A stretch of DNA of 10,403 bases from Octopus sinensis (lineage: Eukaryota), in assembly GCF_006345805.1 (NCBI RefSeq), contig NW_021827612.1, positions 1-10,403 of the forward strand, given 5' to 3'. Below the pieces are notes generated by a model, which ran no database searches, was not told the origin of the DNA, and was given only the letters and a program-made list of their open reading frames with translations. The translations under genes were made by a program, and so were the position numbers. This document shows positions 1 to 10,403 of this stretch, piece after piece. Within the stretch, counting starts at the first letter, position 1. Every line of letters starts with the position of its first letter.

Positions 1-617
1 ATCTCCACCATTGCACGACTTCTTCAACTTTAACTTTCCCTTTCCCATTGCTTCTTCCTCAAGGTATTTTGGCGCTTCTTCCTCTCACCCTCTTTAATTC
101 TTTCTTTCTCTCTCTCTTGGTCATTGCTTCTGTTCTCGGCCCTCCTCAATCCCCCCCTCTCTCTGTCTCTCTTTCTCTCTCACCTTCTTGCAACCTGGTG
201 CTACTAAGCTATTCCATTGGTGACAGCCGCTTGTACAACACGTGTCTTCTCTACTGAAAAGGTAACCGCTTCCCACGCTTGCTGATCAATTGTTTTTGTC
301 CCATTTTGTCTCAAAGGCGTAAGACGCCCCCGTATCATTCCATTTTTATTCGTTACTGTTTCCAATTTTATCTTCGTCTCTTGTTTTCCTATTCGTCTCT
401 GTTGTCACATTCTTTCCTTCTACCAAGCAAATCTAATGCCCATACCTTAGCTTTTCCTTGGGGCTGGCCGTTTTGGAGCAAACCTCAGAATGAAACAATC
501 GAAATTTGCCATGATAAATTGGTTTCTGACTGAAGAATGAAGGCTCTGAATGACTGTCCGTTTTTCCGTGTTCGTCAATTCGTGAATTTCACGTTCTTTA
601 TATATAAAGTTTTATTC
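1..617. other. Pyrimidine-rich non-coding segment, possibly the decayed 3' region of a Penelope-like retroelement
   Basis: CT-rich low-complexity tract (~40-185). CTGAAGA...GAAT...GTC at 530-558 resembles a degenerate hammerhead core of the kind found in Penelope pseudo-LTRs. The segment ends at a (TA)n run. No RT or GIY-YIG motif is visible. Confidence 0.25.
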
Positions 618-634
618 TATATATATATATATAT
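618..634. repeat. (TA)n microsatellite
   Basis: Direct reading of the sequence. Confidence 0.95.
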
Positions 635-851
635 CTCAGGCTCTTGTTGTTTGTGCAGAAATTGCATATGTCTCATGTAGAGTGATTTATGTATGGTCGG
701 TTTCATTATAATATCCTTCCATTTGACATCAAAATCAGTGTTGTGTTTTTTTAAGTGCCAGGTGTAGTTTGAGAAAGTTGCATAGTTCTTCTTTTCAACA
801 ATCCTGGTGAAAGAGGCTTAAATTAGCATTGTTTAAACTAAACCTCTGGCA

Positions 852-1052
852 TGTGTGTATATGTGTGTATTCCTCACCAGTGTTGGTTTGTTCACGTCCT
901 TGTAATTTAGTTGTTCAGTATTAGAAACTGATAGAATAAGTAATTGGCTCAGTGAAATAAATATACTGGGGATGACTCATTTGGCTAAAAATATACTTCA
1001 AGGCAATGCCCCAACATGGCCACAGCTCAATGACTAGAACAAGAAAAGGATA
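852..1052 (+). mobile_element. Diverged 3' module of SINE family A
   Basis: GATAGAATAAGT...CATGGCCACAGCTCAATGACTAGAACAAGAAAAGG aligns by eye to the reverse complement of 7599-7780 (GATAGAATAAGT...CATGGCCACAGTCAAATGACTGAAACAAGTAAAAGAG). It is preceded by a TG/TA microsatellite, as in the other copies. Confidence 0.65.
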
Positions 1053-1094
1053 GGTGTTTGTGTTTTGGGTTCTATTTTCTTGTTTGTCATCAAA

Positions 1095-1151
<57 letters not shown>

Positions 1152-1158
1152 ATATATA
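1095..1158. repeat. (CT)n followed by (TA)n compound microsatellite
   Basis: Direct reading of the sequence. Confidence 0.95.
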
Positions 1159-1491
1159 GAGACCCCCTTTGGTCACAAATGACCATGGAATTGCACCTAG
1201 AAAGTTACCCTCCAAGGCACAAGTCTGGGGGCAAGGTTGTTTATGGAAGACCAGCAGTTGCCCATGCATACCGGCCTCCCCGCTCCATGATACCAGTGTT
1301 ATCCAAGGGAATAGGCAACAGCAGATACAGCTTGGCACCTGTAGCATTGCAACTCATTTCTACAGCTGATTGAACTGAAGCAACAGGAAATAAACTATCT
1401 TGCTCAAGAACACAACACAGCTCGGTCCAGGATTCAAACTCACAAACTCAATATCGGAGGCTCGATGCTCTAACCACTGTGCCATACGCCT
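1159..1491 (-). mobile_element. tRNA-derived SINE, family B, near full length
   Basis: On the minus strand the head is AGGCGTATGGCACAGTGGTTAGAGC (A box) ... GAGTTTGAATCC (B box), followed by a CORE-like GTGTTGTGTTCTTGAGCAAGA. The body is colinear with the plus-strand copy at 6565-6900. Confidence 0.85.
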
Positions 1492-1494
1492 TGA

Positions 1495-1497
<3 letters not shown>

Positions 1498-1547
<50 letters not shown>
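1498..1547. repeat. (TA)n microsatellite
   Basis: Direct reading of the sequence. Confidence 0.95.
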
Positions 1548-1550
<3 letters not shown>

Positions 1551-1788
1551 CTTGCCCTATACACTAGGGATCTTGAAAATTTCATATCTTTATTTCTCCT
1601 GCTCTTCCCTTGAAAATCTTGGGCTTCTCCATTGGAATGAGAGAGGGCAGATTCAAACAATCATTTTACAATCAGGGAAAAATCCCAAACCCAAAATATT
1701 TCTAATTCCCTGTTTTTGCCAAAAACCAGAAACTATCAACTTTTTAAAACATACACACACACTCACATGTACACACTTTCTTTTTTAA

Positions 1789-2011
1789 CCCTTTCATTAC
1801 TAACCCGGCTGAAACCAGCTCTGTCTCTGTAGTGCACAAATGTCTTGGTTTCAAAAGTTCTGATTTAAAATCTTCCACCAAACCTTAGTCACAATTTATG
1901 TTCCTAACACTAGCTTAATGATAACTAAGTTATTTTACTAAATTCTTTGTTATATTCAAAATTAATTGAAAGAAACACAGAGCATCTCAAACAGAATATG
2001 GTAACAAAAGG
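1789..2011 (+). mobile_element. piggyBac-type MITE, unit F1
   Basis: TTAA (1785-1788) then CCCTTT...; ends TGGTAACAAAAGG then TTAA (2012-2015). TTAA flanks with CCC...GGG termini are the established piggyBac signature. No coding capacity. Strand labels for the MITE units are arbitrary and give relative orientation only. Confidence 0.8.
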
Positions 2012-2035
2012 TTAAAGTCACCATGATATTTTTAA

Positions 2036-2258
2036 TCCTTTTGATACCACCAACCCGGCTGAAACCACCTCTGGCTCTGTAGTACAAATGTCTTGTTTTC
2101 ATAAGTTTTGAATTAAAATCTTCCACCTAACCTTAGTCACAATTTATGTTCCTAACACTAGCTGAATGATAACTAAGTTATTTTACTAATTTTTTTGTTA
2201 TATTTAAAATTAATTGAAAGAGAAACAGCATCTCAACAGATATATGGTAACAAAAGGG
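2036..2258 (+). mobile_element. piggyBac-type MITE, unit F2
   Basis: TTAA (2032-2035) TCCTTTTGATACCA ... TGGTAACAAAAGGG TTAA (2259-2262). 14-bp imperfect TIRs; colinear with F1. Confidence 0.85.
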
Positions 2259-2481
2259 TTAATGTGTCCCAGCTGAAGTCTAATCACAAATTTTCTGATC
2301 TGACTTGTCTTTGAAATTATTTGTAACTTCCTTTAACTTTCACCTTCCTTATATCCATCTTAAAAGCTTAGTCTTACCAGATGCAAAAGGCTTAGTTTGA
2401 TAGCGAAAGGATGCACGACTTAAATTCAGAAGGAACAGTGTTGGAACAAATTCCTCAAGACAACTTGTCTGATGCTTTAGT

Positions 2482-2544
2482 TATAGCCTTGGGCCGGCCA
2501 AATCCTTCTGAGTGGATTTGGTAGATAGAAACTGAAAGAAGCCC
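2482..2544 (+). mobile_element. Internal fragment of SINE family A
   Basis: TATAGCCTTGGGCCGGCCAAA...GAGTGGATTTGGTAGATAGAAACTGAAAGAAGCCC matches the reverse complement of 5641-5705. Confidence 0.8.
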
Positions 2545-2604
2545 CATATGGCCTAGTGGTTAGAGTATTGCTCTCACAGTCTAGTGATCATGATTTCAAT
2601 TCCT
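2545..2604 (+). mobile_element. Isolated tRNA-like SINE head (B/F-like)
   Basis: A box TGGCCTAGTGG (2549-2559) followed by TTAGAG, and a B-box-like GATTTCAATTCC (2592-2603). Truncated at the MITE array. Confidence 0.6.
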
Positions 2605-2620
2605 AGACATTTGTACTTAA

Positions 2621-2843
2621 ACACTTTTGTTACCATATTTCTGTTGAGATGATCTGAGTTTCTTTCAATTACTTTAAATATAACAAAGAATTTAGTAAAA
2701 TAACTTCGTTATAATTAAAGCTAGTTTTAGGAACATAAATTGTGACTAAGGTTTGGTGGAAGATTTTAATTCAAAACTTAGGAAAACAAGACATTTGTAC
2801 TACAGAGCCAGAGGTGGTTTCAGCTGGGTTTGTATCAAAAGGG
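2621..2843 (-). mobile_element. piggyBac-type MITE, unit R1
   Basis: TTAA (2617-2620) ACACTTTTGTTACCA ... TGTATCAAAAGGG TTAA (2844-2847). Reverse complement of the F units. Confidence 0.85.
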
Positions 2844-2867
2844 TTAAAAATATCATGGTGACTTGAA

Positions 2868-3088
2868 CCCTTTTGTTACCATATTTCTGTTGAGATGATC
2901 TGAGTTTCTTTCAATTACTTTAAATATAACAAATAATTTAGTAAAATAACTTTGTTATAATTAAAGCTAGTTTTAGGAACATAAATTGTGACTAAGGTTT
3001 GGTGGAAGATTTTAATTCAAAAGTTAGGAAAACAAGACATTTGTACTCAGAGCCAGAGGTGGTTTCAGCTGGGTTTGTATCGAAAGGG
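2868..3088 (-). mobile_element. piggyBac-type MITE, unit R2
   Basis: TGAA (2864-2867) CCCTTTTGTTACCA ... TGTATCGAAAGGG TTAA (3089-3092). Confidence 0.85.
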
Positions 3089-3111
3089 TTAAAATATCAC
3101 GGTGATTTGAA

Positions 3112-3332
3112 CCCTTTTGTTACCATTTTTCTGTTGAGATGCTCTGTCTTTCTTTAAATTACTTTAAATATAACAAAGAATTTAGTAAAATAACTTAGTT
3201 ATCATTCAACTAGTGTTAGGAACATAAATTGTGACTAAGGTTAGGTGGAAGATTTTAATTCAAAACTTATGAAAACAAGACATTTGTACTACAGAGCCAG
3301 AGGTGGTTTCAGCCGGGTTGGTATCAAAAGGA
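3112..3332 (-). mobile_element. piggyBac-type MITE, unit R3
   Basis: TGAA (3108-3111) CCCTTTTGTTACCA ... TGGTATCAAAAGGA TTAA (3333-3336). Confidence 0.85.
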
Positions 3333-3356
3333 TTAAAAATATCATGGTGACTTTAA

Positions 3357-3499
3357 CCCTTTTGTTACCATATTTCTGTTGAGATGCTCTGTGTTTCTTT
3401 CAATTAATTTTGAATATAACAAAGAATTTAGTAAAATAACTTAGTTATCATTCAACTAGTGTTAGGAACATAAATTGTGACTAAGGTTTGGTGGAAGAT
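3357..3499 (-). mobile_element. piggyBac-type MITE, unit R4 (truncated)
   Basis: TTAA (3353-3356) CCCTTTTGTTACCA ...; similarity to the other units stops after GGTGGAAGAT (3499). Confidence 0.8.
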
Positions 3500-3605
3500 A
3501 AATGCTAATGATGTAAGTGCCCGAAACTTTCAACCCTCCCTTGGGTCACTCTATAACTTTTCTTGGTTATTAATAGCACCAAATATGTTTAATGATGTTT
3601 TGAGT

Positions 3606-3983
3606 TTGCTTTTCCTTTTTAAGTCACTGGACTGTGGCCATGCTGTAGCACCACTTTGAAGAGTTTAGTTGAATAAATTGACCCTGGGGTTTTTTAAGTG
3701 TAGTACTTTTTCTCTAAGCCTCTTTTTGAAAACTGTTAAGTTATGGGAATGTAAACAAACCAGCAGTGGTTGTCAAGCTGTTGTGCAGCACAAATACAAC
3801 TCAAACATACACTTATACACACACACACACACACTTAAATTGCTTCTTTCAGTTTCTATCTGCCAAATTCACTCACAAGGGTTTGGTTGGCCCAGGGCTT
3901 TAGTAGAAAACACTTGCACAGTGGGATTGAACCCCAAACCATGTGGTCGGAAAGCAAACTTCTTACCACACAGCCATGCCTGC
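3606..3983 (-). mobile_element. SINE family A, diverged full-length copy with internal CA microsatellite
   Basis: Same order of blocks as 7599-8009: 3' module (GACTGTGGCCATGCTG, GGTTGTCAAGC), CA repeat, CTTCTTTCAGTTT, then the tRNA-like head CTTACCACACAGCCA. A short deletion lies in the CORE-like part. Confidence 0.85.
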
Positions 3984-3985
3984 AC

Positions 3986-4097
3986 TTATATATACACACA
4001 CATACACATATATATATATATACACTCACACACACACTTATATAAACTGACACTTAAGTAGCATGTATGTTTGTGTGTGTGTGTGTGTGTGTGTGTG
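3986..4097. repeat. Mixed TA/CA and (GT)n microsatellites
   Basis: Direct reading of the sequence. Confidence 0.9.
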
Positions 4098-4492
4098 CAT
4101 TTTTAAGACTTCTTCATGAATTCCAACATCAAATTGCAGGTAAAATTAACTCCAACAGTCATTACAGCTGAAAATAGAAATCTAATTAATTAGTCATTAA
4201 TTACTTTAGGCAATTGGCATATGTGTCTCTCTCTGCGTTTGTGTGTGTATATATATATATATATAAAAATGCTAATTTATTCATCTTGCATTTTTTATAT
4301 ATTTGTTCGAGGCAGAAGGTATTAAATGTACTTTTTGTTGTTATTGTTGCTGTTGCTTAGCTCCAAGTCAGTTCTGATTTTTTTATTCACCATAAAGGTT
4401 ATATACAGAATTGGACAACACATCCGGGGAACTTAAAATAACAAAAGCAAATGACAAGACAAGAAAGAATAAAAATAATAATGAATTATTAG

Positions 4493-5186
4493 ATCATCAT
4501 CATCGTTTAACGTCCGTTCTCCATGCTAGCATGGGTTAGACGGTTCGACTGGGGGATCTGGGAAGCCAGAAGGCTGCACCAGGCTCTGGTCTTATCTGGC
4601 AATGTTTCTACAGCTGGATGCCCTTCCTAACGCCAACCACTCCGTGAGTGTAGTCGGTGCTTTTTACGTGCCACCTGCACGGAAGCCAGTCGAGGCGGCA
4701 CTGGCTTCGGTCACGATTCGGATGGTGCTTTTTATGTGCCACCTGCACGGAAGCCAGTCGAGGCGGCACTGGCTTCGGCCACGATTCGGATGGTGCTTTT
4801 TACGTGCCACCTGCACGGAAGCCAGTCGAGGCGGCACTGGCTTCGGTCACGATTCGGATGGTGCTTTTTATGTGCCACCTGCACGGAAGCCAGTCGAGGC
4901 GGCACTGGCTTCGGCCACGATTCGGATGGTGCTTTTTACGTGCCACCTGCACGGAAGCCAGTCGAGGCGGCACTGGCTTCGGTCACGATTCGGATGGTGC
5001 TTTTTATGTGCCACCGACACGGAAGCCAGTCGAGGCGGCACTGGCATCGGCCACGATTCGGATAGTGCTTTTTACGTATCTCCAGTCCAGGGGTCCTGGC
5101 ATCTGCCAGGTGCCAGTCATAGGATTGGTTCGATTTCGATTCCAATTTCACTTGCCCCAACAGGTCTTCGCAAGCAAAAGGGGGGG
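4493..5186 (-). mobile_element. Non-autonomous retroelement D with (GAT)n tail, carrying an internal 68-bp tandem array
   Basis: The (ATC)n-GTTTAACGTCCG...CCATGCTAGCATGGGTT end and the TTTCTACAGCTGGATGCCCTTCCTAACGCCAACC block recur at 8443-8594. A microsatellite tail implies LINE-driven retroposition. No pol III head is seen, and the 5' boundary is approximate. Confidence 0.7.
4656..5078. repeat. 68-bp minisatellite: 6 full units plus a partial seventh, alternating A/B variants
   Basis: Unit starts at 4656, 4724, 4792, 4860, 4928, 4996 and 5064. Unit A is GGTGCTTTTTACGTGCCACCTGCACGGAAGCCAGTCGAGGCGGCACTGGCTTCGGTCACGATTCGGAT. Confidence 0.97.
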
Positions 5187-5300
5187 ATAATATAGATAAT
5201 TACAAATGAGGTGTAAATGTCCACTAGATCCCCGGAATCGAGTGGTTACATTTTCGTCAGTTTTTTCCACAGAACAATATATTTCACCAAATTTCTAAAT

Positions 5301-5404
5301 ACATTTTCAGAATATTTTTCATAAAATTCCAGCAAACAGAGTTTCAAAAATACCTTTCTCAACATTTCAAAATACATTTTCAAAACACATTTCGAATATA
5401 CATA
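5301..5404 (+). repeat. Left copy of a ~100-bp direct duplication (putative TSD)
   Basis: Matches 5730-5829 with 4 substitutions and one 4-nt indel by manual alignment. Confidence 0.9.
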
Positions 5405-5729
5405 CTCTTTTCAGTCATTTGACTGCGGCCATGCTGGAGCACCGCCTTTAATCGAGCAACTCGACCCCGGGACTTATTCTTTTGTAAGCCCAGTACTTAT
5501 TCTATCGGTCTCTTTTGCCGAACCGCTAAGTAACGGGGACGTAAACACACCAGCATCGGTTGTCAAGCAATGCTAGGGGGACAAACACAGACACACAAAC
5601 ATACACGCACACACACATATATATATATACATATATACGACGGGCTTCTTTCAGTTTCCGTCTACCAAATCCACTCACAAGGCATTGGTCGGCCCGGGGC
5701 TATAGCAGAAGACGCTTGTCCAAGGTGCC
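5405..5729 (-). mobile_element. SINE family A, 5'-truncated copy
   Basis: Highly similar to ~7612-7940. Lacks the tRNA head and ends in the CORE-like block at CCAAGGTGCC. Confidence 0.9.
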
Positions 5730-5829
5730 ACATTTTCAGAATATTTTTCATAAAATTCCAGCAGAGTTTCAAAAATACCTTTTTCAACATTTCAAAATAC
5801 ATTTTCAAACCAACTTTCGAATATACATA
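5730..5829 (+). repeat. Right copy of a ~100-bp direct duplication (putative TSD)
   Basis: Matches 5301-5404. Confidence 0.9.
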
Positions 5830-6061
5830 TTCCAAAACTTCAAGAAACATTTTACAGAGCTTCAAAATTACTTTTCTCAAATCAAAAATACATAATTTCG
5901 AACTTACATATCACAGAATTTCAACATTTTACAGAATTTCACATTACATTTTCAAGGTTTCGAAATACATTTTCACAGAGTTTTTCTTTTTTAACACAAT
6001 CTTAGACGCATTCTATTATCTGTTCCACATCCCTGAAGCTCATCACTGCAAGTCAGTCCTG

Positions 6062-6430
6062 TTCCATTTGTGACCATCCTGTCTTTTATTCAGATATATC
6101 TAGGAGCACATTTTCCACTATAGAATGTGTTGAAGGAGATTTAGCTGCTATTTCTAGCTGACTGAGTGACAATATCGTTGATCCCTCTCCACCATGTTGT
6201 TGTTGTTGTTGTTGTTGTTGTTTAACCCAGGTCCTGATCCAGCAGACATATGACCACAGGAGATGGTCCACCTGTGGCCATCCCAACTTTTATTTAGGCA
6301 TGGTATATCTTGGACCTAGCTGTTTAATGTGATCTTTCCTTTTGACGATAACAGGGTGGTGTTTAAAGGACATTTGGCTGCTATTTCTAGCCTGTTAAAA
6401 AGCCCACATAAAGTCTCCTTGTTGGCACAT
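6062..6430. mobile_element. Two adjacent degenerate copies of an unclassified repeat (family E), with a (GTT)9 run between them
   Basis: GTGACCATCC..CTTTTATT (6070) matches GTGGCCATCC..CTTTTATT (6274). ATTTAGCTGCTATTTCTAGC (6139) matches ATTTGGCTGCTATTTCTAGC (6372). (GTT)n lies at 6196-6222. Confidence 0.55.
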
Positions 6431-6449
6431 TGTTGTTGCAGTTATTGCT

Positions 6450-6563
6450 GTGGTTGTGTGGTAAGAAGCTTGCTTCCCAACCACATGGTTTCGGGTTCCG
6501 TCCCACTGTGTAGCACCTTGGGCAAGTATCTTCTGCTATAGCCTCAGGCCAACCAAAGCCGTG
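6450..6563 (+). mobile_element. SINE family A head plus CORE-like block, 3'-truncated
   Basis: GTGGTTGTGTGGTAAGAAGC (A-box region), GGGTTCCGTCC (B-box-like), and GCACCTTGGGCAAGT, which resembles the CORE-SINE CCTTGGGCAAG motif. Confidence 0.85.
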
Positions 6564-6564
6564 A

Positions 6565-6900
6565 AGGTACATGGCTGAGTGGTTAGAGCATCAGGCTCAG
6601 AATCATGACATAGTGAGTTCAATTCTCAGGTCGGGCTGTGTGTTGTGTCCCTGAGCAAGACACTTTATTTCATGCTACTCCGGTTCACTCAGCTATAGAA
6701 AGGAGTTGTGACATCACAGGTGCCAAGCTGTATCGGCCCCTTTGCCTTTCCCTTGGATAACATCGGTGATGTGGAGAGAAAGAGGCTGGTACGCATGGGC
6801 GACTGATGGTCTTCCATAAACAACCATGCCTAGACCTGTGCCTCAGGGATTTTCTAGGTGCAATCCCATGGTCATTCATGACTGAAGGGGGTTTTTACCC
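6565..6900 (+). mobile_element. tRNA-derived SINE, family B, near full length
   Basis: A box TGGCTGAGTGG, B box GAGTTCAATTC, and GTGTTGTGTCCCTGAGCAAGACAC. Colinear with the reverse complement of 1159-1491. Confidence 0.85.
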
Positions 6901-6922
6901 CCTTTTTTTTTATATCTACATA

Positions 6923-7186
6923 CACACGCGTCGGCTGCGGGGTCACTCCGAAAAGCTCTATCTGCGACGATTTCATCTCAATCGAAGGAGAGGGGCTTTC
7001 TCCGTCCAGGTTGCGGATTCATGGAATAAGCTGCCGGACGAGATGGTGAAGATGCCGACGACCGCTCGGTTCAAAGTCTCCCTTGACCACAAGTGGCCGG
7101 AACTCTTTACATGAACACCACCCTGTACATAACTCCATGTCCCCCTACATGGCCTTGCTTTTTGAGCCAAAAATTAACTAACTAAC
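6923..7186 (+). mobile_element. 5'-truncated CR1-clade LINE: ORF2 C-terminus, short 3' UTR and (TAAC)n tail
   Basis: The frame ending at TGA 7112-7114 encodes HTRRLRGHSEKLYLRRFHLNRRRGAFSVQVADSWNKLPDEMVKMPTTARFKVSLDHKW. This fits the CR1 ORF2 C-terminal pattern RGH..KL...FS.RV...WN.LP......S...FK..LD. A microsatellite tail AACTAACTAAC follows at ~7176-7186. Confidence 0.85.
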
Positions 7187-7204
7187 ACACATGCACACAC
7201 ACTT

Positions 7205-7534
7205 TTTTTTCCATGCTTGTATGTATTGGAGGGAGTTCTTTGAGTCAAATGCTTTCCACGGCTGGGTGCCCTCTCTGTCACCAAACCTCACTTGTTTCTA
7301 AGCAAAGTAATATTTTCCCATCGCCTGACATGTTCTTACATAACACTGGGAATGAATGACACCGCCTCTATGACAGGGATGCTCATTTACAACTATCATG
7401 CGGTGTGAAAACATGAACAAACACACATTAACACCCATAAGAGGCTTCTTTCAGTTTCCCTCTACTAAATCCGTTTGCAATGTTTTGTAGAAATACTTGC
7501 CCAAGGTACCATACAGTGAAACAGAACCAAGAAC
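7205..7534 (-). mobile_element. Chimeric SINE: family A CORE-like block joined through a CA tract to a different 3' module with a D-type end
   Basis: 7440-7534 matches family A (GGCTTCTTTCAGTTTCC, CTTGCCCAAGGT). TTTCCACGGCTGGGTGCCC...CACCAAACC (7253-7287) and CCATGCTTG (7211) match the D-type 3' end. The sequence in between differs from the usual A 3' module. Confidence 0.65.
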
Positions 7535-7598
7535 TTCCGGCACATTCCTTCGTTTTATATCCATTTCTCAATGCTGGCATCAGTCGGACAGATCTTAG

Positions 7599-8009
7599 AC
7601 TCTTTTACTCTTTTACTTGTTTCAGTCATTTGACTGTGGCCATGCTGGAGCACTGCCTTTAGTCGAGCAAATCAACCCTGGAACTTATTCTTTGTAAGCC
7701 CAGTACTTATTCTATCGGTCTCTTTTGCCGAACCGCTAAGTGACGGCAACGTAAACACACCAGCATCGGTTGTCAAGCAATGCTAGGGGGACAAACACAG
7801 ACACAAACATATACACGCACATACATATATATATATACGTATATACGACAGGCTTCCTTCAGTTTGCGTCTACCAAATCCACTCACAAGGCTTTGGTTGG
7901 CCCGAGGCTATAGCAGAAGACACTTGCCCAAGGTGCTACGCAGTGGGACTGAACCCGGAACCATGTGGTCGGTAAGCAAGCTACTTACCACACAGCCACT
8001 CCTGCGCCT
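7599..8009 (-). mobile_element. SINE family A, full-length copy (~410 bp)
   Basis: The minus strand reads AGGCGCAGGAGTGGCTGTGTGGTAAG (A box), GGGTTCAGTCC (B box), CACCTTGGGCAAG (CORE-like), an internal TA/TG microsatellite, a 3' module and a (TAAAAGAG)n tail. Confidence 0.9.
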
Positions 8010-8249
8010 ATTGAGTATTTTTATGTTTGGGTGCTCTACCTGTCACCAACACTTACCCATTTTTTTTAAATATTGGAATGTTTTTGTTTAGTTTTATTCT
8101 TTAGAATTCTGTTCAACTTAGAATGCACACAACTATAGGATGTATTGTTTGCAGGGAACATTGACTAAATAACACCGTTTTTAGCTCAGTCAGTCTTATG
8201 CAAAGAGGTGGGAATGAAAACTTACACACACAAACACACACACACACAT

Positions 8250-8420
8250 AGGTGTTAAGCGTAGCTGTGTGGTAAGAAGTTTGCTTCCCACCCAAACGAT
8301 TCCAGGTTCAGTCCCACTGTGAGGTACCTTGGGCAAGTGTCTTCTACTATAGCTTTCATCTGACCAAAACTTTGTGAGTGAATTTGACAGATGGAAACTG
8401 AAGGAAGCCTGTCGTATATA
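8250..8420 (+). mobile_element. SINE family A 5' half (head to internal microsatellite)
   Basis: GCTGTGTGGTAAGAAG, AGGTTCAGTCCC, ACCTTGGGCAAGTG, GGAAACTGAAGGAAGCCTGTCGTATATA. Confidence 0.85.
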
Positions 8421-8442
8421 TATTTTCATATATATATATATA

Positions 8443-8594
8443 ATCATCATCATCGTTTAACGTCCGTTTTCCATGCTAGCATGGGTTGAGCGATTTTGAC
8501 TGAGGGCTGACAACCAGATGCCAGTTTGATCTGGCAGAGTTTCTACAGCTGGATGTCTTTCCTAATGCCAACCACTCCGAGAGTGTAGTGGGTG
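8443..8594 (-). mobile_element. 3' fragment of retroelement D
   Basis: Colinear with 4493-4660; stops at GGGTG, exactly where the 68-bp array begins in the other copy. Confidence 0.85.
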
Positions 8595-8604
8595 TATATA
8601 TATA

Positions 8605-8814
8605 TTCTTTTCTACTCTAGGCACAAGGCCCGAAATTTCAAGGGAGGGACCAGTCTATTAGATCGACCTCAGTACGCAACTGGTACTTAATTTATTGACC
8701 CCGAAAGGTTGAAAGATATAGTTGACCTCAGTGGAATTTGAACTCAGAATGTAAAGAGAGATGTAATACCACTGTTTCACCCAGCATGCTAACGTTTCTC
8801 CCAGCTCGCCGCCT
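8605..8814 (-). mobile_element. tRNA-derived SINE, family C, copy 1
   Basis: On the minus strand the head is AGGCGGCGAGCTGGGAGAAACG, the B box is GAGTTCAAATTCC, and the central block is TTCAACCTTTCGGGGTCAATAAATTAAGTACCAG. Colinear with 8830-9057. Confidence 0.8.
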
Positions 8815-8829
8815 TTGACGGAATATATA

Positions 8830-9057
8830 TTCTTTTCTTCTCTAGGTACAAGGCTCGAAATTTTTCGGATGTGAGTGGTGGGTAGGGGGCAGTTGATTAG
8901 ATTGACCCCAGTACACAACTGGTACTTAATTTATCGACCCCGAAAGGATGAAAGGCAAAGTTGACCTCGGTGGAATTTGAACTCAGAACATAATGATGGG
9001 TGAAATACCGCTAAGTGCTTCACCCACCATGCTAACATTTCTGCCAGCTTGCAGCCT
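8830..9057 (-). mobile_element. tRNA-derived SINE, family C, copy 2
   Basis: Same architecture as copy 1, with central block GCCTTTCATCCTTTCGGGGTCGATAAATTAAGTACCAG. Confidence 0.8.
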
Positions 9058-9070
9058 ATATATATATATA

Positions 9071-9114
<44 letters not shown>
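9058..9114. repeat. (TA)n/(CA)n microsatellite
   Basis: Direct reading of the sequence. Confidence 0.9.
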
Positions 9115-9115
<1 letters not shown>

Positions 9116-9177
9116 TTTATTTATTTATTGGTTAAACTGGCAAAATGACCATTCCGAAATATAATAATATATATATA

Positions 9178-9500
9178 TTTTTTTTTTTTTTTTATGTGCC
9201 CTTTTCAAGCCTAGCCAGGCCCATGGGTCCAGTTTCCTGGTTTCTATGACGTATGTGTTCCCCCCCCCCAGCTGGACAGGACGCCAGTCCATCACAGCGT
9301 TACTCAAGAAACAGGAAGAAAGCAGGAGAGAAAGTTGGGGTGAAAGAGTACAACAGGGATTGCCACCACCCCCTGCCGGAACCTCGTGGAGTTTTTAGGT
9401 GTTTTCGCTCAATAAACGCACACAACGCCCGGTCTGAGAATCGAAACCGTAATCCTCCGACCGCGAGTCCACTGCCCTAACCACTAGGCCATTGTGCCTC

Positions 9501-9503
<3 letters not shown>
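9178..9503 (-). mobile_element. tRNA-derived SINE, family F, full length with A16 tail
   Basis: The minus strand reads GTGGAGGCACAATGGCCTAGTGGTTAGGGC (A box) ... GGTTTCGATTC (B box), then a body containing GATGGACTGGCGTCCTGTCCAG. The poly(A) tail is the T run at 9178-9193. Confidence 0.85.
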
Positions 9504-9539
<36 letters not shown>

Positions 9540-9544
9540 TATAA

Positions 9545-9578
<34 letters not shown>

Positions 9579-9590
9579 CCACACACACAC
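9504..9590. repeat. (TA)n followed by (CA)n microsatellite
   Basis: Direct reading of the sequence. Confidence 0.95.
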
Positions 9591-9593
9591 TCA

Positions 9594-9971
9594 CTAGCAG
9601 TATCGCCAGCGTTGCTCGTGCTTGTTTCGCCCTTTAGAATTGGAATTTTTGAAAAGTAAAATTTTGCATTATGTAGCTTGTTATTTATTTGATTGAACAA
9701 CATTGAAAAATGGCGACACAGCAGTCAAAAGATCGTAAAAAAAATAGGGATTTTCATAGAAAAAAAAGCACCTTTTTGATGTAAATAATTTTTGGTGTTA
9801 ACATGGTCCGATTTGAATTGTTTCTTCTACGGAAGGAAGAGCAAGCCTTCTTCTATCATACTCTCAATTTTGGTCAACTTGTGCCGTAGGGTCTCGGAGG
9901 AGATAGTGTTAGTTGAAGGCTATCAAACCTGCCATACTCAGACAACTTAGCTTTATATATATATATATATA
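9594..9971 (-). mobile_element. Non-autonomous Helitron-like element
   Basis: The minus-strand 3' end reads ...GCACGAGCAACGCTGGCGATACTG-CTAG|T: a degenerate GC-rich palindrome ~7 nt before a terminal CTAG, then T. This is the established Helitron 3' signature. The other end runs into (TA)n and the canonical 5' TC is not resolved. Confidence 0.6.
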
Positions 9972-10403
9972 CAAAAAGCAATAAAGATTCAAGTTAATTT
10001 AAATGAATTTACTTGAATATGGTACCTAACTTAGATGCACCAAAAAAAAACTATAGTGTTTTAACAATACAGTAATGTGGGGTGATTATATTTAAATTAA
10101 AATTCTGTGATAAGACTGTACATCATCTTTAAAGAACTTAATGAACTTTGGAAATCTGTTTATGTTACTTAATTATTACATCACTTCATGAGTATAGCCT
10201 CAACCACTAGGATGTCTAGAGAACTCACATGTATTTTAGCTGATGAGTACGGGACACGTTATATGCTGTAATTTTTGCAACTTTAATAAAGCCTGTCCTG
10301 TATGAAACGATTGTACTAAAAACCTATCCATTCTTGTTGCTTTCTTTTCGCGTATATATATATATAATTCCATGAGAGTTAGAAGTTGTGAATCCAACCA
10401 ATT

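Follow-up and report, generated by a model that had tools for sequence, protein, structure and literature searches.

We analysed a stretch of 10,403 nucleotides (nt) from Octopus sinensis (NCBI RefSeq assembly GCF_006345805.1, contig NW_021827612.1, positions 1 to 10,403 of the forward strand; hereafter the window), in which six copies of an element of about 223 bp, a putative miniature inverted-repeat transposable element (MITE) of the piggyBac type, lie in two arrays of opposite orientation. Five of the copies are complete and one is truncated. A dimer, F1–F2, occupies positions 1785–2262 on the plus strand and 3.6 copies, R1–R4, occupy positions 2617–3499 on the minus strand. An earlier interpretation made from the letters alone (the sequence-only reading) had described these six copies, with their terminal inverted repeats (TIRs) and a size of about 220 bp, as a possible compound MITE that moves by its outer ends; all the positions and strings it gave for them check out. 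What we find looks like a local cluster of a piggyBac-type element that ordinary recombination has made into a short tandem array, with no demonstrated compound transposon. The locus comprises the following features.

1785–1788, plus strand: outer TTAA on the left flank of the F dimer, by direct reading; TTTT precedes it
1789–2011, plus strand: F1, complete MITE copy; 5′ TIR CCCTTTCATTACTA with 4 of 14 positions changed, 3′ end ...TGGTAACAAAAGG with one G lost
2012–2015, plus strand: TTAA on the 3′ side of F1
2012–2035, plus strand: F1/F2 junction, consisting of TTAA, AGTCACCATGATATTT and TTAA, with the spacer at 2016–2031
2032–2035, plus strand: TTAA on the 5′ side of F2
2036–2258, plus strand: F2, complete MITE copy; 5′ end TCC, a private ACC insertion, 3′ TIR TGGTAACAAAAGGG intact
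2259–2262, plus strand: outer TTAA to the right of the F dimer; the sequence after it, TGTGTCCC, is unique and without the spacer
2263–2616, no strand: 354-bp segment separating the arrays, which holds pieces resembling short interspersed nuclear elements (SINEs)
2482–2544, within the 354-bp segment: SINE-like body fragment
2548–2612, within the 354-bp segment: tRNA-like SINE head
2621/2622–2843, minus strand: R1 element, with its outer TTAA at 2617–2620 and its inner TTAA at 2844–2847
2848–2867, minus strand: R1/R2 junction, the exact reverse complement of the spacer (2848–2863), then TGAA
2868–3088, minus strand: R2, complete copy, with its 5′ TTAA at 3089–3092
3093–3111, minus strand: R2/R3 junction, the 15-nt spacer variant AATATCACGGTGATT (3093–3107, three changes), then TGAA
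3112–3332, minus strand: R3, complete mosaic copy, with its 5′ TTAA at 3333–3336
3337–3356, minus strand: R3/R4 junction, the exact reverse complement of the spacer (3337–3352), then TTAA
3357–3499, minus strand: R4, truncated copy of 143 nt covering only alignment columns 89–233; 3′ TIR intact

The ends of the element read TTAA-CCCTTTTGATACCA ... TGGTAACAAAAGGG-TTAA, with 14-nt TIRs that are complementary at 13 of 14 positions; CCCTTTTGATACCA is the family form of the TIR and CCCTTTTG(A/T)TACCA its degenerate form. Members of the piggyBac superfamily duplicate TTAA and carry TIRs of 12–19 bp with a terminal CC[C/T]T motif (PMC2872659; PMC5381638), and in functional elements the TIR begins with C (PMC5381638). 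Here, TTAA as the target-site duplication (TSD) bounds the F dimer at 1785–1788 and 2259–2262 and recurs at the inner sites as TTAA or the one-base variant TGAA, the TIRs contain the CC[C/T]T motif, and they closely resemble the coral piggyBac and MITE TIRs CCCTTTCACTGCCA and CCCTTTCCCTACTA (PMC2872659). The copies are small and without coding capacity: the longest open reading frame (ORF) touching them, which spans the F1/F2 junction, has 54 amino acids and is without relatives in the protein collection, and no transposase was found in the window. The hallmarks of a piggyBac-type element (TTAA flanks, CC[C/T]T, a 14-nt TIR and no ORF beyond 54 amino acids) thus hold, and the label of a piggyBac-type non-autonomous MITE seems justified on structure. 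Searches with conserved 19–22-mers against viral contigs, metagenome contigs and prokaryotic genomes returned nothing or chance seed matches only, nhmmer with the MITE profile over non-eukaryotic collections gave no extended homology, and a literature search with a TIR 8-mer returned unrelated primers only.

The six copies match each other with BLAST E values of 1e-60 to 1e-120, far beyond chance, and no further copy of the family was found by BLAST in the 10.4-kb window. All inner junctions consist of TTAA or TGAA, a spacer of 15–16 nt and TTAA; with the exact spacer and two TTAA sites, the junction read across the element ends is GGTTAAAGTCACCATGATATTTTTAA[C/T]CC. The unit period is 244–247, and Tandem Repeats Finder assigns the R array a period of 246 with 3.6 copies, 93% matches and a score of 1523. 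When up to three errors were allowed, a scan of the window found the spacer at only the four junctions and in one weak, unrelated match at 10223–10236. This confirms its placement by the sequence-only reading (exact at 2016–2031, as the reverse complement at 2848–2863 and 3337–3352, and as a 15-nt variant at 3093–3107) as well as its absence from the outer flanks, and supports the description of head-to-tail multimers with a fixed spacer. The term tetramer was too generous for the R array: R1–R4 do form a multimer, but only 3.6 copies are present, because R4 has lost its outer end, the 5′ 84 nt of the element, and the DNA to the right of 3499 is unrelated. The R2/R3 spacer carries three changes in 16 nt, whereas the other three are base-identical, which points either to an older lineage for this junction or to a recent homogenisation of the others.

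The two arrays resemble each other most closely around one pair of junctions. F1 is 95% identical to R4 over 147 nt and F2 is 96% identical to R3 over 170 nt. The F1/F2 and R4/R3 junctions have an identical 24-nt core, with no differences, and in both of them the second unit starts with a derived TCC; moreover, in junction-centred segments of 264 nt, F1F2 and R4R3 are 97% identical, whereas all other pairs are at 91–93%. Taken together, the identical core, the derived TCC and the close similarity of the segments indicate that both arrays share one ancestral dimer junction, such that one of the two junctions is a copy of the other, or both are copies of a common source. The units of the R array differ from one another by 7–12 events per 146 nt, which is more than the F copies differ from R4–R3 and indicates that the R array is older than the copying event that links the arrays.

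Further exchange is apparent within the R array. R1 and R2 stand apart as a type of their own: about 8–10 diagnostic differences distinguish them from the other copies, and about six distinguish one from the other. R3 is a mosaic, being F2-like over its first ~160 columns, including the TCC, and R1/R2-like in its 3′ part (G- at columns 181–182 and the TTCA site). A derived T at column 134 is common to R3 and R4, with C kept in F1, F2, R1 and R2, and the TGAA variant is common to two junctions. The mosaic structure of R3 and these common variants have the appearance of marks left by unequal exchange and gene conversion within and between the arrays. Some other descriptions of the locus were tried and rejected. 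A two-unit higher-order periodicity in the R array was discarded, as only the F1F2 and R4R3 pair stands out as close; a model in which a dimer A–B founded the array and all inner units are hybrids with a B-type 5′ and an A-type 3′ part predicts the private 3′ changes of F2 in R1, where they are absent; and an assembly fold-back artefact is at odds with arms that are 95–97%, rather than 100%, identical.

A single hop of a dimer predicts uniform divergence of the F dimer from its source. On this premise, we counted the changes private to each copy. F1 has eight private changes in columns 5–88 and two in columns 89–233, F2 has one in columns 5–160 and six in columns 161–233, and R4 has none. In the F dimer as a whole, 14 of 17 private changes thus fall in the outer 157 of 458 nt and three in the inner 301 nt (binomial 6.6e-5), and a scan over all pairs of cut points against 400 random placements gave P = 0.005, the optimum being reached by cutting F1 at column 84 and F2 at column 160. 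The left cut lies no more than five columns from the point at which R4 is truncated (column 88/89), as expected if the truncated R4 served as the template. The uniform divergence expected of a moved compound unit, and of the dimer hop in the sequence-only reading, was therefore not found. The F dimer, unevenly related to R4–R3, is a mosaic with old outer parts and a young inner part, of which the 264 nt around the junction are 97% identical to R4/R3, a pattern that fits recombination between the arrays better than one clean hop.

The state of the element ends points the same way. According to the sequence-only reading, the outer ends of the dimer are intact and its inner ends damaged, as in a composite transposon with inactivated inner ends. 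Four of the eight inner ends are in fact intact (R4 3′, R3 3′, R2 3′ and R1 5′), and a further one, R2 5′, keeps CCC and has one TIR change. Lesions of the terminal triplet among inner ends are limited to the TCC of F2 and R3 and the one G lost from F1. The TCC, being common to F2 and R3, was inherited, and the lost G, which leaves AAGG, is private to F1 (R4 has GGG) and still reads CCTT on the opposite strand, in agreement with CC[C/T]T. The damaged triplets noted in the dimer are thus present. The four outer ends have fared no better: R4 5′ is deleted, R1 3′ reads GTG instead of GGG, F1 5′ has four of 14 TIR positions changed, and only F2 3′ is intact. In calling the outer ends of the dimer intact, the sequence-only reading was right about TTAA-CCC and about the 3′ end of F2 but not about the TIR of F1, CCCTTTCATTACTA, which keeps TTAA-CCC yet is the most mutated of the TIRs that remain. 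Damage is accordingly not concentrated at the inner ends, and the arrangement of functional outer and disabled inner ends that characterizes a compound transposon is not seen. By now the ends have decayed to different degrees, and we see no sign that the element is still mobile.

At the outer end of R1, the TTAA is off register by one base (in register, the sequence reads TTTA/TAAA). Just outside, 13 nt at 2605–2617 (AGACATTTGTACT) match exactly a motif found within every MITE copy (for example, at 2789–2801 and 3035–3047), with a BLAST E value of about 0.1 and with the first four nucleotides belonging to the adjoining SINE head. This match could be due to chance, or it could be the remnant of a fifth unit lost by deletion at a microhomology (ACT). 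A search of the same flank for a remnant of the spacer gave matches at six of 16 positions, which is not significant.

Two facts do call for a copying event: the junction common to both arrays, and an F dimer that ends exactly at its TIRs and TTAA. We lean, with slightly better than even confidence, towards an explanation that combines double insertion into neighbouring TTAA sites, unequal exchange, and a recombinational transfer of the junction between inverted neighbouring arrays. Two insertions in the same orientation, at TTAA sites 16 bp apart, would have enclosed the intervening 16 bp of old target DNA, now the spacer, between TTAA duplications, the product being TTAA-M-TTAA-spacer-TTAA-M-TTAA, in which M is the element. 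When the two copies then cross over unequally, units are gained but the spacer never comes to lie on the outside, so the restriction of the spacer to inner positions, which the sequence-only reading took to show that the array was built elsewhere, is equally produced in place. Unequal sister-chromatid exchange or replication slippage would then have multiplied the 246-bp unit (element, TTAA, spacer and TTAA), yielding at least four units, mosaics such as R3 and the spread of TGAA variants; the mosaicism is directly visible, and the route to it is the presumed part. Finally, the neighbouring arrays may have exchanged sequence by gene conversion or out-of-register homologous repair, which would be why the F dimer carries the same junction. 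An old MITE resident at the F site, either solo or already a dimer, would have had its interior replaced or extended from an already truncated R4–R3, by a tract made up of the 3′ part of unit A, the spacer and the 5′ part of unit B, and the junction would have arrived with that tract. The mosaic in the F dimer is observed, whereas the direction of transfer and the number of resident copies are what we infer from it. Head-to-tail copies with target-site sequence in each junction and signs of recombination between units, both traits of a tandem array, are found here, whereas the long or multiple arrays of a strict satellite are not, with two and 3.6 units in the window. The fallback offered by the sequence-only reading, a MITE caught turning into a satellite, fits well.

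There are precedents for both the tandem-array and the compound-transposon readings. Genetic work has shown for maize Ac/Ds macrotransposons, as for bacterial composite transposons, that a pair of neighbouring, directly oriented elements can travel together by means of the outer ends. This is the mechanism that the sequence-only reading proposed; here it is one possible reading, and the divergence pattern does not favour it. The closest known match to the locus is CMITE of Acropora corals, a set of piggyBac-derived MITEs that occur at full size in head-to-tail arrays, some of them gapped, in which elements and gaps are highly similar and which the authors attributed to slippage rather than independent insertion (Wang et al. 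2010, PMC2872659). CMITE and the octopus element have in common TTAA duplications, TIRs of 13–14 nt starting with CCCTTT, a size of about 100–220 bp and arrays with conserved gaps; they differ in phylum and have unrelated internal sequence, and the octopus locus has two inverted arrays with one common junction and signs of exchange. Around a piggyBac MITE of the corals, moreover, a new mobile unit termed CMITE-IN has been assembled (PMC2872659). In Drosophila, according to population data, double insertion readily generates dimers of DNA transposons, which expand into arrays by unequal exchange and often carry lesions in their inner TIRs (McGurk & Barbash 2018, PMC5932611). The head-to-tail order, the target-site sequence in the junction and the array expansion are all similar to what we see, and the model explains a spacer confined to inner positions. 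The Drosophila families are P and hobo rather than piggyBac, and both insertions usually hit the same site, leaving one TSD in the junction, whereas here the sites lie 16 bp apart and a spacer is trapped.

Two further systems are more distant. KolobokP elements of molluscs and other invertebrates have a repeat–INT–repeat structure in which the direct repeats (LTDRs) carry short TIRs of their own (Kojima & Bao 2022, PMC9587614); they form multimers, (LTDR-INT)n-LTDR, that are flanked by TSDs and explained by unequal crossover, and solo repeats are excisable (PMC9587614). Multimers of TIR-bearing repeats alternating with a spacer are the point of likeness; the differences lie in the RR...YY ends of KolobokP, its LTDRs of ~450 or 660 bp and its kilobase-sized INT encoding a transposase and a nuclease, where the octopus locus has 16 noncoding base pairs. 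In Xenopus, according to work cited in PMC6004289, the tandem repeats Xmix and Xstir lie inside a TTAA-specific T2-MITE and spread with its TIRs. As described there, they likewise tie a TTAA-targeting MITE to a tandem repeat family, but amplification is confined there to an internal segment within a single pair of TIRs and does not involve complete elements with ends of their own, and the element belongs to the Kolobok superfamily, with AGGRR ends.

The compound MITE is the alternative that most resembles the sequence-only reading: a multimer from elsewhere, or two adjacent R units A–B, would have been excised by a piggyBac transposase through its outermost ends and reinserted at a TTAA. The F dimer is indeed bounded exactly by TIR and TTAA on both sides, homology to R3 breaks off at GGG-TT, and the outside is free of the spacer; the derived TCC of F2 and R3 predates the copying and would disable either as a solo unit; and eukaryotic precedents exist in the TSD-flanked KolobokP multimers, (LTDR-INT)n-LTDR, and in the coral CMITE-IN. 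We nevertheless regard this explanation as possible but on balance doubtful, given that the divergence of the F dimer is strongly uneven where a single hop predicts uniformity, that the outer 5′ TIR of F1, with its four changes in 14, is the worst of those remaining at a time when the inner 3′ end of R4 was intact, and that inner ends are no more damaged than outer ones. Neither end of the R array is intact (one is truncated, and the other has GTG and an off-register TTAA), and movement of a multimer from elsewhere finds no support in the window, where both arrays lie within a single 1.7-kb locus and no second locus with unrelated flanks is seen. A related possibility, which we consider unlikely, is a family that transposes as the dimer, with the fixed 16 bp as its 'INT'. 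Such a family would reproduce the LTDR-INT-LTDR design of KolobokP in miniature within piggyBac, with mobility through the outer ends and growth by unequal crossover, and the F dimer would be one of its insertions, with an interior homogenised later against the neighbouring array.

Three further explanations carry less weight. An inverted segmental duplication independent of transposase, in which replication fold-back or template switching copies part of an array across the 354-bp middle segment, would explain the mirror order (F1>F2> middle <R1<R2<R3<R4, with F1 closest to R4 and F2 to R3) and the breakpoint-like way in which R4 stops abruptly against unrelated DNA at 3499. We think it very unlikely, for neither flank is mirrored (1550–1784 is unmatched to the right of 3499, and the right flank of F2 is unmatched beside R3), R1 and R2 sit between the supposed arms, and random breakpoints would not leave the F dimer with both of its ends precisely at TIR and TTAA. 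These clean ends, in place of a cut somewhere inside the unit, also argue against amplification of the 246-bp unit as an extrachromosomal circle by rolling-circle replication, or by aberrant (alternative or sister-chromatid) transposition, followed by reintegration. Such a route would suit a unit of constant length and spacers that are identical at three junctions, and rolling-circle replication has been proposed for Bari1 arrays (PMC5932611), but the units differ by 3–8% and are mosaics, which speaks for an old array shaped by recombination and not for one burst; the route is the least credible of those weighed here. Barely more plausible is the view that the element is not of the piggyBac type at all, and is instead a Kolobok-type TTAA element or a 246-bp satellite with fortuitous inverted termini. 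Kolobok too targets TTAA, molluscan KolobokP forms multimers, and all six copies in the window lie at one locus. Yet the ends are CC...GG with the CC[C/T]T motif, and Kolobok was rejected as a class because its ends are RR...YY (AGGRR in T2-MITEs), as was KolobokP because of its LTDRs of ~450 or 660 bp and coding INT, compared with units of 223 bp and a spacer of 16 bp; and, in contrast to what the margin of a satellite looks like, the F dimer stops at TTAA with no fraction of a further unit beyond it.

Several considerations temper our preference for double insertion, unequal exchange and junction transfer. R4 is without columns 1–88, so the eight 5′ changes in F1 could be features of an A-type unit; the number of events is small (n = 17), and the scan is a post hoc statistic. 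A dimer hop would equally leave the F dimer bounded exactly by TIR and TTAA and without a spacer on the outside, and an old dimer hop followed by homogenisation of the interior is indistinguishable from conversion of a solo copy. Repeated conversion between the inverted arrays (an 'edge effect') is an alternative that gives an equal picture. The analysis covers one locus, at which the F dimer lies between unique flanks, with a TSD, and its sole counterpart, R4–R3, is truncated and lies within a longer array 850 bp away. Neither the left flank (1550–1784) nor the right flank of F2 has a repeat match in the window, and the SINE head abutted by R1 does not resume past 3499, such that the pre-insertion sequence is not rebuildable from repeats in the flanks; an empty F site would read CTTTCTTTTTTAATGTGTCCC.

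The locus offers a compact and readable example of a cut-and-paste transposon becoming a tandem repeat, from the trapping of target DNA between two insertions through unequal exchange and the exchange of sequence by neighbouring arrays to the decay of the ends, and it would extend the coral and fly findings to another animal group. Were the junction dispersed genome-wide, this would be the first piggyBac-type compound MITE, of relevance to the assembly of new mobile units. On the present evidence, the locus is a new example of a known route and changes no general view.

The opposite orientation of the arrays has a structural consequence. The F dimer (1785–2262) and R3–R4 (3108–3499) constitute a long inverted repeat of ~375 bp, and in a single-strand fold of 1785–3499, 375 base pairs form between F and R3–R4, with a minimum free energy of -799 kcal/mol compared with -358 kcal/mol for shuffled sequences. 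A read-through transcript of this inverted repeat would be predicted to form a hairpin, making the locus a possible candidate source of hairpin RNA or a fragile palindrome.

The window around the arrays is AT-rich and microsatellite-rich eukaryotic DNA with many SINE-like repeats. Rfam, tRNA and Pfam searches of the window gave no matches. In the protein collection, an ORF across a SINE has no relatives, and none of the ten longest ORFs of the window is itself present. At 4588–5131, a GC-rich 68-bp tandem repeat (~6–8 copies, 95% matches) begins exactly at the end of a dispersed repeat, 4500–4659, which is 78% identical to a second copy at 8450–8594 that runs into (TA)n; the 68-bp repeat is a further tandem array joined to the end of a mobile element. 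At 3610–3976, 5401–5731, 7612–7939 and 7821–8033/8227–8439 lie copies of a composite SINE-like repeat that combines the core GGCCATGCTGGAGCACCGCC with a tRNA-like part and contains a CA/TA microsatellite, and one pair of these repeats forms an inverted repeat of 213 nt. We take the composite repeats to be octopus-SINE-like, an assumption that no tool or literature search confirmed; the literature search with a SINE 16-mer returned nothing. A second family of tRNA-like SINE heads, GGCCTAGTGGTTAGAG...TTCAATTC, is found at 2548–2612, 6571–6625 and 9432–9492, with R1 abutting the end of the first, and none of these heads is called a tRNA by ARAGORN or Rfam. ORF segments lie at 6806–7114 (plus strand) and 1090–1347 (minus strand), both without a Pfam match; one ORF has the tail ...RGAFSVQVADSWNKLPDEMV...FKVSLDHKW, and an inverted copy of its N-terminal part lies near 1321–1419. 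The tail presumably resembles a C-terminal motif of ORF2 from invertebrate non-LTR retrotransposons, a resemblance for which Pfam gave no support. Long dinucleotide microsatellites are unusually dense for 10 kb, with (TC)26 at 1095–1147, (TA)25 at 1498–1547, (TG)17 at 4064–4097, (TA)26 at 9057–9107 and (TA)37 at 9504–9578.

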